64,000 nt of DNA from Ranitomeya imitator. Its lineage: Eukaryota. Position numbers and translations under genes: made by a program. Shown one piece after another: positions 32,551 through 62,937 of the stretch. Below the pieces are notes generated by a model. It was not told where the DNA came from. It did no database searches and saw nothing but the letters and a program-made list of their open reading frames with translations. The DNA is taken from positions 13,392,001 to 13,456,000 of the forward strand of contig NC_091289.1 in NCBI RefSeq assembly GCF_032444005.1, read 5' to 3'. The stretch's first letter is position 1; each line of letters opens with the position of its first letter.

Positions 32551-33159
32551 ATGGCGCTGGAGCTGGAGGAGAACGTGCCCACCACTGAGGAGGAGGATGA
32601 GGGCGATGATGGGGAGGATGAGACCCCCGCAGGGAAGAGAAGCTCCAGGAGGAAGAAGGCGGCTGCAGCCTCATCGGGGGCCTCTAAGAAGAAGGGAAAG
32701 AAGAAGAACCAGCCCGGCAGGTACAGCCAACTGGTGGTGGACACCATCCGCAAACTGGGCGAGAGGAACGGCTCCTCCCTGGCCAAGATCTACGGCGAGG
32801 CCAAGAACGTGTCCTGGTTCGACCAGCAGAACGGCCGCACCTACCTGAAGTACTCGGTGAAGGCGCTGGTGCAGAACGACACCCTGCTGCAGGTGAAGGG
32901 GGTCGGGGCCAACGGCTCCTTCCGCCTCAACAAGAAGAAGCTGGAGGGCGGGGGGACCCCGGAGAGGAAGGCGGCCCCCAAACCGGCGGCGGCGGCCAGG
33001 AGGACTACAAGTGCCAGCAGCAGCGCCGCGAAGAAGAGCCACAAGAAAGCCAAGAAGGAGAAGCCCAAGAAGAGCAGCAAGAAGAAGGCGGCGGCGGCGG
33101 CGAGTGCGGGGGGCAGGAAGGTGAAGAAGACGGCGAAGCCCAAATCCAGGAAGGCGTGA
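32551..33159 (+). CDS. H1-10: Linker histone H1.10 (H1x), 202 aa, intronless
   Basis: MALELEEN start, diagnostic [32 protein letters not shown]...[33 protein letters not shown] globular domain, SHKK and GGRKVKK..KP C-tail. Good Kozak context; in-frame TGA 30 nt upstream fixes the start. Confidence 0.97.
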
Positions 33160-33439
33160 GGGGGGGGGGGGCGACCGCCGACCGGACCGCTCGTGTTCGT
33201 GCAATGATGTGATCGTGTCCCCCCGAGAGGCGGAGCCCGGACACGGCGGCCCAAGGCCGGACACAACAGCCCGGACACAATGTATCCACTCATTCTGCTC
33301 GGAACTTTCACACAATCGGCGCCACTTGATTGGCCCGAGAGAAGCTGTCACCCTAGCGACGGCGTTCCATGGGCGTGGCCTCGGTGACAGCTGTGAAGTG
33401 GCAGGAGGAGGCGCAGGACAGTGAGGCCTCTCGGGGGTT

Positions 33440-34270
33440 CTTCTCCTTCTCTTCTCCTCCGCTTTCTTCCTCTACTCCTCTGCTTTCTCCTCTTTCCTCT
33501 TCTACTCTTTCTTCATCTCCTTCTCTTCCTCTTCTCCTTTTTTCCTCCTTTCTTCATCTCCTCCTCCTTCTGTCCTTTCCTCTCCTCCTTTTCCTCTTTA
33601 CTCTTCTTCCTCTTCTCCATCTCCTCTTCTTATCTCCTCCTTCTCTTCCCCATCTTTTTCCTCTTCTCCTTTTCTTATTCTTCATCTCCTCCTCCTTCTA
33701 TCTTCTTTCCTCTCCTCCTTCTATTTACTCTTCCCCTCCTCCACTTTCTTCCTCTTCCTCCTCTGCTTTTTCGTCTTCTTATTCTTCATCTCCTCCTTCT
33801 GTCCTTTCCTCTCCTCCTTTTCCTCTTTACTCTTCTTCCTCTTCTCCATCTCCTCTTTCCTCCTTCTTCTCTTCCCCATCTTTTTCCTCTTCTCCTTTTC
33901 TTATTCTTCATCTCCTCCTCCTTCTATCTTCTTTCCTCTCCTCCTTCTATTTACTCTTCCCCTCCTCCACTTTCTTCCTCTTCCTCCTCTGGTTTTTCGT
34001 CTTCTTATTCTTCATCTCCTCCTTCTGTCCTTTCCTCTCCTCCTTTTCCTCTTTACTCTTCTTCCTCTTCTCCATCTCCTCTTTCCTCCTTCTTCTCTTC
34101 CCCATCCTTTTCCTCTTCTCCTTTTCTTATTCTTCATCTCCTCCTCCTTCTATCTTCTTTCCTCTTCTCTTTTTTCTCTCATACTTTCTTGTTATTCTTC
34201 ATCTCCTTCTCCCCTTTCCTATCCTCCTCCTATTTACTCTCCTCCTTCTCCTCTTTACACTTCTTTCGCT
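33440..34270. repeat. Polypyrimidine low-complexity tract with a 226-bp higher-order repeat
   Basis: Almost only C/T. The TTATTCTTCATCTCCTCCTCCTTCTATC block recurs at 33675, 33901 and 34127. Confidence 0.9.
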
Positions 34271-34378
34271 CCTCGGGACCTTTCATTCCTTTTGTAGATT
34301 TTCTGTTGCTCTTTATTTTGCACTTTATAATTTTATCTTTTATGTATTTTATGTTCGGTTATTTTTTATGCTGAATTA

Positions 34379-34384
34379 AATAAA
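34379..34384 (+). terminator. H1-10: Candidate polyadenylation signal of H1-10 copy 1
   Basis: Overlapping ATTAAA/AATAAA followed by a T/GT-rich region. No histone stem-loop after the stop. Confidence 0.6.
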
Positions 34385-59625: not shown

Positions 59626-60409
59626 TAATACAGCTAAGCGCTGCCCCCGCACATTAGTACAGTTCCTCGGGATCGGTCCATCATTCTTCATCTCTAAGGT
59701 GCTGACACTTTGTATCGGGGATGTCGGTGCTGTGGGACATCGCAGTAGACCATCCCCCCCATACAGTACAGTATTGGGGGGATTATAGAGACCCCCGTCT
59801 CCGCTTCTGGACCACACTGCAGAGAGATGAATATCATCCCGATAGAGAACACAAAAAAGAAAATAAATAGATTTCACATTTTTCGAGCTCCTGCAGCGTC
59901 ACCAGTACACAGAGCCGCGGCCCCTCCACACCAGCTCCGATAGGATCTGCCCCCAATAATGACATGATGCCCCACCCCAATATAAAAGCAGTTCTGACAA
60001 TACATTTAGCGTAGAAAGGGTTAAGCAGCGATGTCCGGGACAACCGACAACTTGTGCAGGTTCCTTCCTGACAACCTGGGGAAACATCACAATACAGCAC
60101 AACATGTGGACCCCTAAAAACACCACGAGCGACCACAACCGGAACTAAGGGGGAACCAGTGTAAAAGGAAAAACCGGGAGAACCATTAACCCCTCGTGAG
60201 CACAGCAGGGGGCGGAGCCGAGCACTTACCACCCCCATGCCAGCACAAGAACTCGCCCCAAAGGGGCCGATCCGGGTATTGGGGTCACAAAGAACCACGG
60301 GGACAAATGTAGAGCGTAAAATATAGGGGCCCCCCATGGGCATCTATAGTACTGGGGTCCATAAGGAGAGGGGCGTCCACTGCACTCCGAGAAGCCCACT
60401 GGAAAAGAG

Positions 60410-62290
60410 GGGTAGACAGGAGTAACCCCTGCAGGACCGTACGAGAAAGGGGGGGGGGGGGGGGGAGGGGCAGGAATTAACCCCTGCAGGACTGTATGGG
60501 AAGGAAGGACAGGAGTTAACCCCTACAGGGCTGTACGGGGAGAGGGGACAGGAGTTAACCCCTGCAGGACTGTACAGGGAGGAAGAACAGGAGTTAACCC
60601 CTGCAGGACTGTACGGGGAGAGAGGACAGAAGTTAACCCCTGCAGGACCGTACAGGGAGGAAGAACAGGAGTTAACCCCTGCAGGACTGTACAGGGAGGA
60701 AGGACAGGAGTTAACCCCTGCAGGACTGTGTGGGGAGGAAGGACAGGAGTTAACCCCTACAGGGCTGTACGGGGAGAGGGGACAGGAGTTAACCCCTGCA
60801 GGACTGTACAGGGAGGAAGAACAGGAGTTAACCCCTGCAGGACTGTGTGGGGAGGAAGGACAGGAGTTAACCCCTACAGGGCTGTACGGGGAGAGGGGAC
60901 AGGAGTTAACCCCTGCAGGACTGTACAGGGAGGAAGAACAGGAGTTAACCCCTGCAGGACTGTGTGGGGAGGAAGGACAGGAGTTAACCCCTACAGGGCT
61001 GTACGGGGAGAGGGGACAGGAGTTAACCCCTGCAGGACTGTACAGGGAGGAAGGACAGGAATTAACCCCTGCAGGACTGTACGGGGAGGAAGGACAGGAG
61101 TTAACCCCTGCAGGACTGTACGAGGAGGAAGGACAGGAGTTAACCCCTGCAGGACTGTATGGGGAGGAAGGACAGGAGTTAACCCCTGCAGGACTGTACG
61201 GGGGGGGGGGGAAGAAGTTAACCCCTGCAAAACTGTACAGGGAGGAAGGACAGGAGTTAACCCCTGCAGATCTGTAAAGGGAGGGAGAACAGGAGTTAAC
61301 CCCTGCAGGACTGTATGGGGAGGAAGGACAGGAATTAACTGCTGCAGGACTGTACGAGGAGGAAGAACAGGAGTTAACCCCTGCAGGACTGTACGGGGGG
61401 GGGGGGGGGGGGGGGAGAGAACAGAAGTTAACCCCTGCAAGACTGTACAGGGAGGAAGGACAGGAGTTAACCCCTGCAGGTCTGTACAGGGAGGAAGAAC
61501 AGGAGTTAACCCCTGCAGGACTGTATGGGGAGGAAGAACAGGAGTTAACCCCTGCAGGACTGTATGGGGAGGAAGAACAGGAGTTAACCCCTGCAGGACT
61601 GCATGGGGAGGAAGGACAGGAGTTAACCCCTGCAGGACTGATGGGGGGGCAGGACAAGAGTTAACCCCTGCAGGACTGCATGGGGTGGCAGGACAGGAAT
61701 TAACCCCTGCAGGACTGATGGGGGGGGGGGGGGCAGGACAGGAGTTAACCCCTGCAGGACTGATGGGGGGGGCAGGACAGGAGTTAACCCCTGCAGGACT
61801 GAATGGGGTGGCAGGACAGGAAATAACCCCTGCAGGACTGATGGGGGGGGGCAGGACAGGAGTTAACCCCTGCAGGACTGTACGAGGAGGAAGGACAGGA
61901 GTTGACCCCTGCAGGACTGCATGGGGTGCCAGGACAGGAGTTAACCCCTGCAGGACTGATGGGGGGGGGGGGGGCAGGACAGGAGTTAACCCCTGCAGGA
62001 CTGATGGGGGGGGGGGGGGGGGGGGCAGGACAGGAGTTAACCCCTGCAGGACTGAATGGGGTTGCAGGACAGGAATTAACCCCTGCAGGACTGATGGGGG
62101 GGGGGGGCAGGACAGGAGTTAACCCCTGCAGGACTGTACGGGGAGGAAGGACAGGAGTTAACCCCTGCAGGACTGTACGGGGAGGAAGGACAGGAGTTGA
62201 CCCCTGCAGGACTGCATGGGGTGCCAGGACAGGAGTTAACCCCTGCAGGACTGATGGGGGAGCAGGACAGGAGTTAACCCCTGCAGGCCT
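60410..62290. repeat. ~39-bp minisatellite (GGACAGGAGTTAACCCCTGCAGGACTGTACGGGGAGGAA), about 47 copies, with a local 117-bp trimer
   Basis: 13-aa periodicity in the ORF track; variable poly-G runs. Confidence 0.95.
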
Positions 62291-62556
62291 GCGCTGTGTA
62301 CCCCTTTCTATAGAGGATTGTGGCGGTAATATCTCCAATACTGGATATTAATCCTTGAAGGGTTTCGGACCGTACCACCAGTAGGGGGGATGGGGGTAAT
62401 ACTGGACGCAGCATTGGTCGGATAGATAGTTGGAGCTTCCGATAGACTCCCGATTAATCGCTGCGTTCATTGATGGCGGCCGCTCACATCTCCCGGGCGG
62501 TCTCCGCTTTGGGGGCTTCTGGGTGCTGGTATGGGGGTCCCTCCGCTCCCGGGGTC

Positions 62557-62937
62557 TCACTTCTTGGAGCTCTGCGTCTTCTTGGGCAGCAGCACGGCCT
62601 GGATGTTGGGCAGGACGCCCCCCTGGGCGATGGTCACCCCTCCCAGCAGCTTGTTCAGCTCCTCGTCGTTGCGGATCGCCAGCTGCAGGTGCCGCGGGAT
62701 GATGCGCGTCTTCTTGTTGTCCCGGGCCGCGTTCCCCGCCAGCTCCAGGATCTCCGCGGACAGGTACTCCAGCACGGCGGCCAGGTACACGGGGGCGCCC
62801 GCCCCCACCCGCTCGGCGTAATTCCCCTTCCGGAGCAGCCGGTGGACGCGGCCTACTGGAAACTGCAGCCCGGCCCTGGAGGAGCGGGACTTGGCCTTGG
62901 CCCGGGCCTTACCGCCGGATTTCCCTCGTCCTGACAT
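62557..62937 (-). CDS. Histone H2A, orphan and probably replication-independent type, 126 aa
   Basis: [30 protein letters not shown]...[30 protein letters not shown]. True ATG is at 62937. No SQ(E/D)Y motif and no 3' stem-loop. Confidence 0.96.

Follow-up and report, generated by a model that had tools for sequence, protein, structure and literature searches.

What is a lone H2A gene doing next to linker histone genes, with no other core histone at hand? The question is raised by a stretch of 64,000 nucleotides from the frog Ranitomeya imitator (contig NC_091289.1 of GCF_032444005.1, positions 13,392,001 to 13,456,000 of the forward strand; hereafter the window, in which all coordinates are counted), where two H1 genes and a convergent H2A gene follow RAB7A. 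The initial annotation saw in these three genes a possible co-regulated replacement-histone module of non-mammalian vertebrates, lacking the stem-loop of replication-dependent histone genes. Our analyses point to a somewhat different answer. The locus is, we believe with fair confidence, an ancestral tetrapod block of two independently promoted, stem-loop-less histone genes, in which the H2A would be a distinct, polyadenylated, replacement-type variant. We would tentatively go further, though at something short of an even chance, and regard this H2A as an unnamed tetrapod variant that has stayed invariant for about 350 million years, a non-mammalian counterpart of H2A.J that was lost on the way to placental mammals while its promoter was kept.

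The orphan H2A and its protein

The three histone open reading frames are intact and all lie downstream of RAB7A. The first, at 32551-33159 on the forward strand, is intronless and encodes a 202-amino-acid orthologue of H1.10, also known as H1x (Pfam PF00538 Linker_histone, E 1.9e-15); the second, likewise intronless and on the forward strand at 51217-51768, encodes an H1.10-like paralogue of 183 amino acids, the anuran "type A" (PF00538 Linker_histone, E 9.2e-16). The H2A faces them on the reverse strand, its coding sequence of 126 amino acids and a stop occupying 62557-62937, with the ATG at 62937 and the stop codon at 62559-62557. Both the histone fold and the docking domain of a core H2A are found in the protein (PF00125 Histone, E 4.2e-15; PF16211 Histone_H2A_C, E 5.3e-21). 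The Rfam model Histone3 gave no match to the histone stem-loop at its gathering score in the whole 64 kb and none at E <= 10 in 30000-64000, and the stem-loop consensus pattern, with up to three mismatches allowed, matched nowhere in the window. A six-frame motif scan of the window found no H2B, H3 or H4 either. The description of three stem-loop-less histone genes beside RAB7A, in a window without the remaining core histones, was thus sound.

What sets the orphan H2A apart is a small set of residues. Four features distinguish it from 104 other H2As: S7; S60, where 96 of the 104 have T; Q122, where most have E or D; and a short tail that closes with SSKK, the full C-terminus reading TQSSKK. 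Annotated H2As matched it at 92-100% identity in a protein search, the identity being complete for emu, kiwi, flamingo, shearwater, duck, stork, owl, alligator and wall lizard, and complete also for the turtle H2A found beside H1.10; the caecilian copy differs by one residue, the ranid frog copy has an identical tail, and the exact 126-residue sequence is present in 335 blocks of the sequence collection. The canonical H2A tails of the same lineages vary among themselves. At the level of codons, 35-45 of 105 differ between the frog and each sauropsid (codons 103-123 were left out of this comparison) and not one of the changes is nonsynonymous; among the sauropsids, 23-41 of 126 codons differ, again with synonymous changes only. 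As nothing but synonymous change is seen, purifying selection must have acted on every residue, including those specific to the variant. The protein would then be a distinct, near-canonical H2A variant under extreme purifying selection, marked by the four features above and apparently unnamed. Our search of the open-access literature found no description of it or of its linkage to H1.10, and it seems to be undescribed. A protein search restricted to the tail found no fish or shark H2A ending in TQSSKK, a weak negative since the database was clustered at 90% identity.

The catalogue of vertebrate core-histone variants has been built almost entirely on mammals, and a stem-loop-less H2A that is invariant from frogs to birds, tail included, and lacking in mammals would, if true, be a missing entry in it. 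One may ask what a near-canonical replacement H2A is for, whether its Q122, beside the K119/T120 modification sites, is of consequence, and what substitutes for it in mammals.

Among known histones, the comparison that suggests itself is with H2A.J, whose gene lacks the stem-loop, produces a polyadenylated mRNA, lies outside the large clusters (PMC9526256) and has been reported as mammalian. Like H2A.J, the orphan H2A is near-canonical and differs mainly in a short C-terminal tail that holds an S/T-Q motif, and the two are complementary in their taxa, the orphan H2A having been seen only in non-mammals. Its role is expected to resemble that of H2A.J. Descent from a common H2A.J gene is another matter, however: H2AJ lies with H4C16 in the ART4/MGP/PDE6H region, where the main histone cluster and H2AFJ of chicken are also found (PMC6813082), whereas the orphan H2A belongs to a RAB7A/H1.10/HMCES locus and has a different tail sequence. 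Because the loci differ, and the chicken H2AFJ sits in a cluster flanked by ART4/MGP/PDE6H, synteny does not support orthology with H2A.J and we rejected it. At one further position, where H2A.J carries Val11, the orphan H2A has Ala. As a group, the frog genes recall human histone cluster 4 (H2AJ and H4C16) in being few, in lying away from the main clusters and in including a stem-loop-less H2A; unlike cluster 4, they pair a linker histone with the H2A, include no H4 and have a stem-loop in neither gene type. Identity with H2A.X was likewise considered. S17, the G at the LLGGVTIAQ position and the T-Q pair in the tail are shared with H2A.X, but the promoter and gene structure differ, and the C-terminus TQSSKK is not the SQ(E/D)-hydrophobic motif of H2A.X, so that this identity was rejected; so was the idea of an H2A.X-like core, since canonical H2As of fish and frogs carry the LLGG residue as well.

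Promoter, intron and 3' end of the H2A gene

The promoter module of the H2A gene, at 63104-63201 on the reverse strand, consists of an octamer (ATGCAAAT, 63201-63194), a CCAAT box (63147-63143) and a GC box (63109-63104), with further CCAAT boxes upstream; in all sauropsid loci a CCAAT comes after the octamer at +26 and another at about +57. Between the promoter and the ATG, the frog gene has a predicted 77-nt intron in the 5' untranslated region (5' UTR; 63022-62946, reverse strand), which opens with GTACGT, contains CTAAC, closes with a pyrimidine run and CAG, and ends 8 nt before the ATG. The same layout of GT donor, TAAC branch-like site, pyrimidine run and CAG, about 80-90 nt long, was present in all 12 sauropsid loci, and the NCBI model of the alligator gene makes use of the intron, its gene range being 668 nt for a coding sequence of 579 nt.

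At the other end, no stem-loop-like motif was found within 5 kb downstream of the H2A in any of 13 loci (the frog and 12 sauropsids), which, with the negative searches of the window, agrees with a replacement histone gene, a kind that lacks the 3' stem-loop or histone downstream element as a processing signal. The sauropsids share two conserved 3' blocks. One surrounds an AATAAA about 1 kb past the stop; the other, about 200 nt long and conserved from lizard to birds, lies 1.7-2.7 kb past the stop (in four of the loci at L001:12735, L002:12884, L003:12684 and L011:~13000). A splice acceptor opens this second block and an ATTAAA lies inside it, which gives it the look of a conserved terminal 3' exon. 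The TGA stop of the H2A and the Lys codon before it together make up a donor-like site, GTGAG (62555-62560, reverse strand, in the frog); it is present in frog, alligator and birds and absent in turtle and lizard. The "X1" gene models of birds, kiwi among them, splice from this stop-overlapping GTGAG into the 3' blocks and so read past the stop. The peptide that they add shows no conservation and, in some species, runs into stop codons, for which reason we take the extension to be UTR structure rather than a conserved extension of the protein.

The frog gene departs from this pattern. Its unique 3' flank (62292-62556, reverse strand) contains neither a canonical poly(A) hexamer nor a stem-loop and is abutted by a 39-bp minisatellite of about 1.8 kb (60459-62291; Tandem Repeats Finder). 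A second minisatellite, with a 20-bp unit, occupies 63642-64000, upstream of the ATG by about 0.7 kb, so that there is one on either side of the gene. Of the polyA-type and intron features that had been attributed to the three genes, poly(A) hexamers do follow both H1 genes and an intron is predicted in the H2A 5' UTR, but neither AATAAA nor ATTAAA is found within 5 kb past the stop of the frog H2A.

From these parts, the life of the transcript can be sketched. The H2A would be transcribed from its canonical-looking octamer and CCAAT promoter, and the RNA would be spliced at the short 5' UTR intron, its 3' end being formed by cleavage and polyadenylation and not by stem-loop processing. Since it would end in poly(A) rather than a stem-loop, the mRNA would escape the SLBP-dependent restriction to S phase and could supply H2A outside it, as mammalian H2A.J does. 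A canonical-type promoter, splicing and the poly(A) signals of the sauropsids together lead us to predict an mRNA that is polyadenylated and not restricted to S phase; for the frog, we infer polyadenylation, replication independence and the replacement-histone role from the sequence and its relatives. Consistent with transcription, 21 runs from eight studies contain 0.21-0.55 of the sampled words of 62292-63641; these runs are small contig sets (38-351 million letters) of transcriptome-like character, their RNA origin being the search tool's guess. A share of about one-half would fit a transcript that extends from the 5' exon to the border of the repeat.

Several observations sit less well with this. 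No AATAAA or ATTAAA occurs for 6.2 kb downstream of the frog H2A, the first being at 56355, and the 39-bp minisatellite begins only 265 nt past the stop. The sauropsid 3' blocks have no significant counterpart in the frog by blastn or nhmmer. The support for transcription of the frog gene comes from shares of words, not from reads, and from runs whose RNA origin is a guess. The differences between the orphan and canonical H2As are small, and a distinct nucleosomal function is putative. Finally, an octamer with CCAAT is the type of promoter that S-phase H2A and H2B genes use, and transcription of the H2A may therefore still be tied to proliferation. (A 20-nt match to the sauropsid 3' blocks, at ~62345-62364, had an E value of 0.049 and was set aside as too weak.)

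The last of these points can be made into a rival explanation, according to which the H2A is still coupled to proliferation, driven in S phase by the octamer/CCAAT promoter known from replication-dependent H2A and H2B genes, and has merely acquired a poly(A) site in place of its former 3' end. The strict conservation of the promoter module speaks for this. However, replication-independent genes are usually marked by just such a loss of the stem-loop, by introns and by long conserved 3' regions that hold poly(A) signals, and a tail that is invariant and specific to the variant speaks for more than a part in bulk supply. We consider this explanation unlikely, though it deserves to be taken seriously, and keep to a replacement-type H2A.

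Linkage across tetrapods and probable loss in placental mammals

If the H2A is a gene of its own kind, why does it lie beside H1.10? We approached this through synteny in a sample of tetrapods comprising frogs, a caecilian, a turtle, a lizard, an alligator, birds and two placental mammals. In the frog window, RAB7A is the upstream neighbour of the H1 genes and has their orientation; its coding exons, from the first ATG to the stop, extend over ~21584-24469 of the forward strand in four exon blocks whose frames carry Ras-family peptide motifs. The order COPG1 (+), HMCES (+), H2A (+) and H1.10 (-) was found in alligator, emu, turtle, lizard and eight further bird loci, and in a compact bird locus (L005), the sole one among the birds to reach that far, RAB7A (-) is next after H1.10. 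Apart from its extra H1, the frog has this arrangement too, read from the opposite strand. Microcaecilia, a caecilian, has an H1x gene and, 7.7 kb further on, a convergent H2A of 125 amino acids, and in the ranid frog Staurois, HMCES lies 7.6 kb before the H2A; in a frog, too, it is therefore HMCES and not a canonical histone cluster that lies past the H2A. Such a cluster just outside the window, which would turn the three genes into the edge of an ordinary array, was not found wherever the region beyond the H2A is visible, HMCES being there instead. Of the synteny that the initial annotation proposed to check, H1.10-H2A linkage was found in the sauropsids and the caecilian and HMCES-H2A linkage in the ranid frog. 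The best explanation is that RAB7A-H1.10-H2A-HMCES-COPG1 is an ancestral tetrapod linkage block. With no H2B, H3 or H4 in the 64 kb and with RAB7A, HMCES and COPG1 for neighbours, its histone genes lie outside replication-dependent clusters, where replacement histones are found.

The proposal of a non-mammalian module fares unevenly: the linkage of H1.10 and H2A does extend over frogs, caecilian, turtle, lizard, alligator and birds, but the second H1 is a paralogue of the anuran clade only. The further statement, that human H1-10 has no adjacent H2A, has a parallel in both placentals, kangaroo rat and panda, as the coding sequence is missing from each. A distance of 6.2 kb separates H1.10 from HMCES in the kangaroo rat, and no remnant of the H2A could be detected there. 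At L013:15359 on the minus strand, however, a 17-nt string that contains the octamer is identical to the sauropsid promoter, in the expected place and on the expected strand, and a CCAAT follows at the sauropsid spacing. The panda locus has the octamer-CCAAT module with one substitution, 8.9 kb beyond H1.10 and again on the expected strand (L014:19349, minus); no H2A coding remnant was found in this locus, which includes 527 N. With the module present and the coding remnant absent, the H2A coding sequence appears to have been lost, and its promoter retained, in these two placentals, and the same course of events may hold for placental mammals at large. The retained module may now serve another transcript, one candidate being the antisense long noncoding RNA beside human H1-10; the papers on H1FX-AS1 that we found give no structure for the locus.

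In other respects, the mammalian H1.10 locus resembles that of the frog. HMCES adjoins H1.10 in the kangaroo rat, and the N-tail motif and globular domain of H1.10 are conserved; what the frog has in addition is the adjacent H2A and the extra tandem H1 paralogue. Mammalian H1.10 is intronless, lacks a stem-loop, is replication-independent and has polyadenylated mRNA.

Could the three genes nevertheless have been held together by selection for shared expression control, as the initial annotation supposed? The adjacency of H1.10 and H2A in both amphibians and sauropsids is what a co-regulated module would predict, and neither gene type has a stem-loop. The arrangement of the genes tells otherwise. 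They converge, so that no promoter can be shared, and their separate promoters have different sets of motifs: GGTCC and TATA in H1.10, with an H1 box in the two frog genes only, against octamer and CCAAT in the H2A. Moreover, the positions of HMCES and COPG1 are equally conserved, so slow rearrangement alone would explain the linkage; mammals retain H1.10 without the H2A, and in the kangaroo rat HMCES still adjoins H1.10 after the H2A has gone. Given convergent genes, differing promoters, non-histone neighbours conserved to the same degree and mammals that keep H1.10-HMCES without the H2A, the linkage is best seen as one by descent, of separately controlled genes, and we find co-regulation distinctly improbable. 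Least probable of all is that the frog H2A has fallen silent or is decaying, its 3' end disrupted by the minisatellite, with only the sauropsid copies functional: the missing hexamer, the nearby repeat and the untraceable 3' blocks might suggest as much, but the reading frame is intact and has no nonsynonymous difference in 105 codons though one codon in three has changed, the signals of promoter and intron are undamaged, many runs contain about half of 62292-63641, and a second frog (Staurois) and the caecilian retain the gene.

The two H1 genes of the frog

The linker histone side of the block has a history of its own. We assign 32551-33159 to H1.10 because its protein has the acidic N-tail of the MALELEE type and a KKLEGGG motif past the globular domain, as amniote H1.10 has; an H1x winged-helix globular domain, an N-tail of the form MS/A-(L/V)-ELEE and a position beside HMCES/RAB7A, by which H1.10 is recognised, are all found here. 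The gene at 51217-51768 combines the same H1x globular domain with N- and C-tails like those of somatic H1s, the type A arrangement; the H1.10 tails being absent, we rejected it as a second H1.10 proper and treat it as a paralogue. Its protein is 68-78% identical over the full length to those of four hyloid frogs (Hyla, Rhinoderma, Dendrobates and Eleutherodactylus), and in other anuran families there are matches of partial coverage with type A tails. In a maximum-likelihood tree, the type A proteins form a clade (support 97/97) nested in the anuran H1.10 group, with the Ranitomeya gene sister to the Dendrobates copy, while the paired copies of salamanders and those of caecilians cluster by lineage. 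As these pairs group by lineage, we claim an anuran-wide paralogue and not a batrachian one. The salamander Pleurodeles has a similar N-tail, yet its protein groups with salamander H1.10 and was rejected as type A.

The two frog genes are identical over 232 bp, their longest common substring, which falls in the part coding for the globular domain (32716-32947 and 51319-51550, forward strand), and in several frogs, species-specific residues of the globular domain are common to both H1 copies. Together, the identical tract and the shared residues indicate gene conversion between the two genes, limited to the globular domain. Frogs would thus have gained a paralogue in tandem with H1.10, and conversion would keep the two identical in the part that codes for the globular domain. 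Conversion confined to one domain, like a mammalian promoter that outlives its gene, would be a side case of interest for the evolution of histone loci.

The promoters of the two genes also resemble each other, with 81.5% identity over 65 nt. The core promoter of H1.10 (31629-31715, forward strand) has an H1-box-like AAACACA, a GGTCCG element and a degenerate TATA, and that of the H1.10-like gene (51078-51160, forward strand) has AAACACA, GGTCCG and TATAAA; a GGTCC-TATA pair precedes H1.10 in four of the eight sauropsid loci checked. The H1.10 promoter element has been misread as a spurious N-terminal extension in the gene models of Spea, Pelobates and Pyxicephalus. A 28-bp minisatellite of about 0.8 kb separates the core promoter of H1.10 from the ATG (31748-32546, forward strand; Tandem Repeats Finder, period 28, 96% matches). 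ATG is absent throughout 31700-32550, and the minisatellite is therefore probably carried inside the H1.10 5' UTR. Its unit resembles the short 5' UTR of the H1.10-like paralogue.

Downstream of H1.10, the first poly(A) hexamers, an ATTAAA overlapping an AATAAA, are at 34375-34383 (forward strand), about 1.2 kb past the stop, from which they are separated by a CT-rich repeat (33512-34231); the AATAAA of the H1.10-like gene is at 52070-52075 (forward strand), 302 nt past its stop. From one H1 gene to the other, most of the 18-kb interval is tandem repeat (35322-50162), with several arrays of 20- and 21-bp units, one of them of 197 copies (42564-46510), and a 31-bp unit (46644-48144). The interval also holds an intact open reading frame of 340 amino acids for a transposase of the Tc1/Sleeping-Beauty type (HTH_SB, HTH_Tnp_Tc3_2 and DDE_3; 37092-38114, forward strand) and a second, inverted and broken copy at 39052-40071 on the reverse strand, and 21-bp minisatellites flank both copies.

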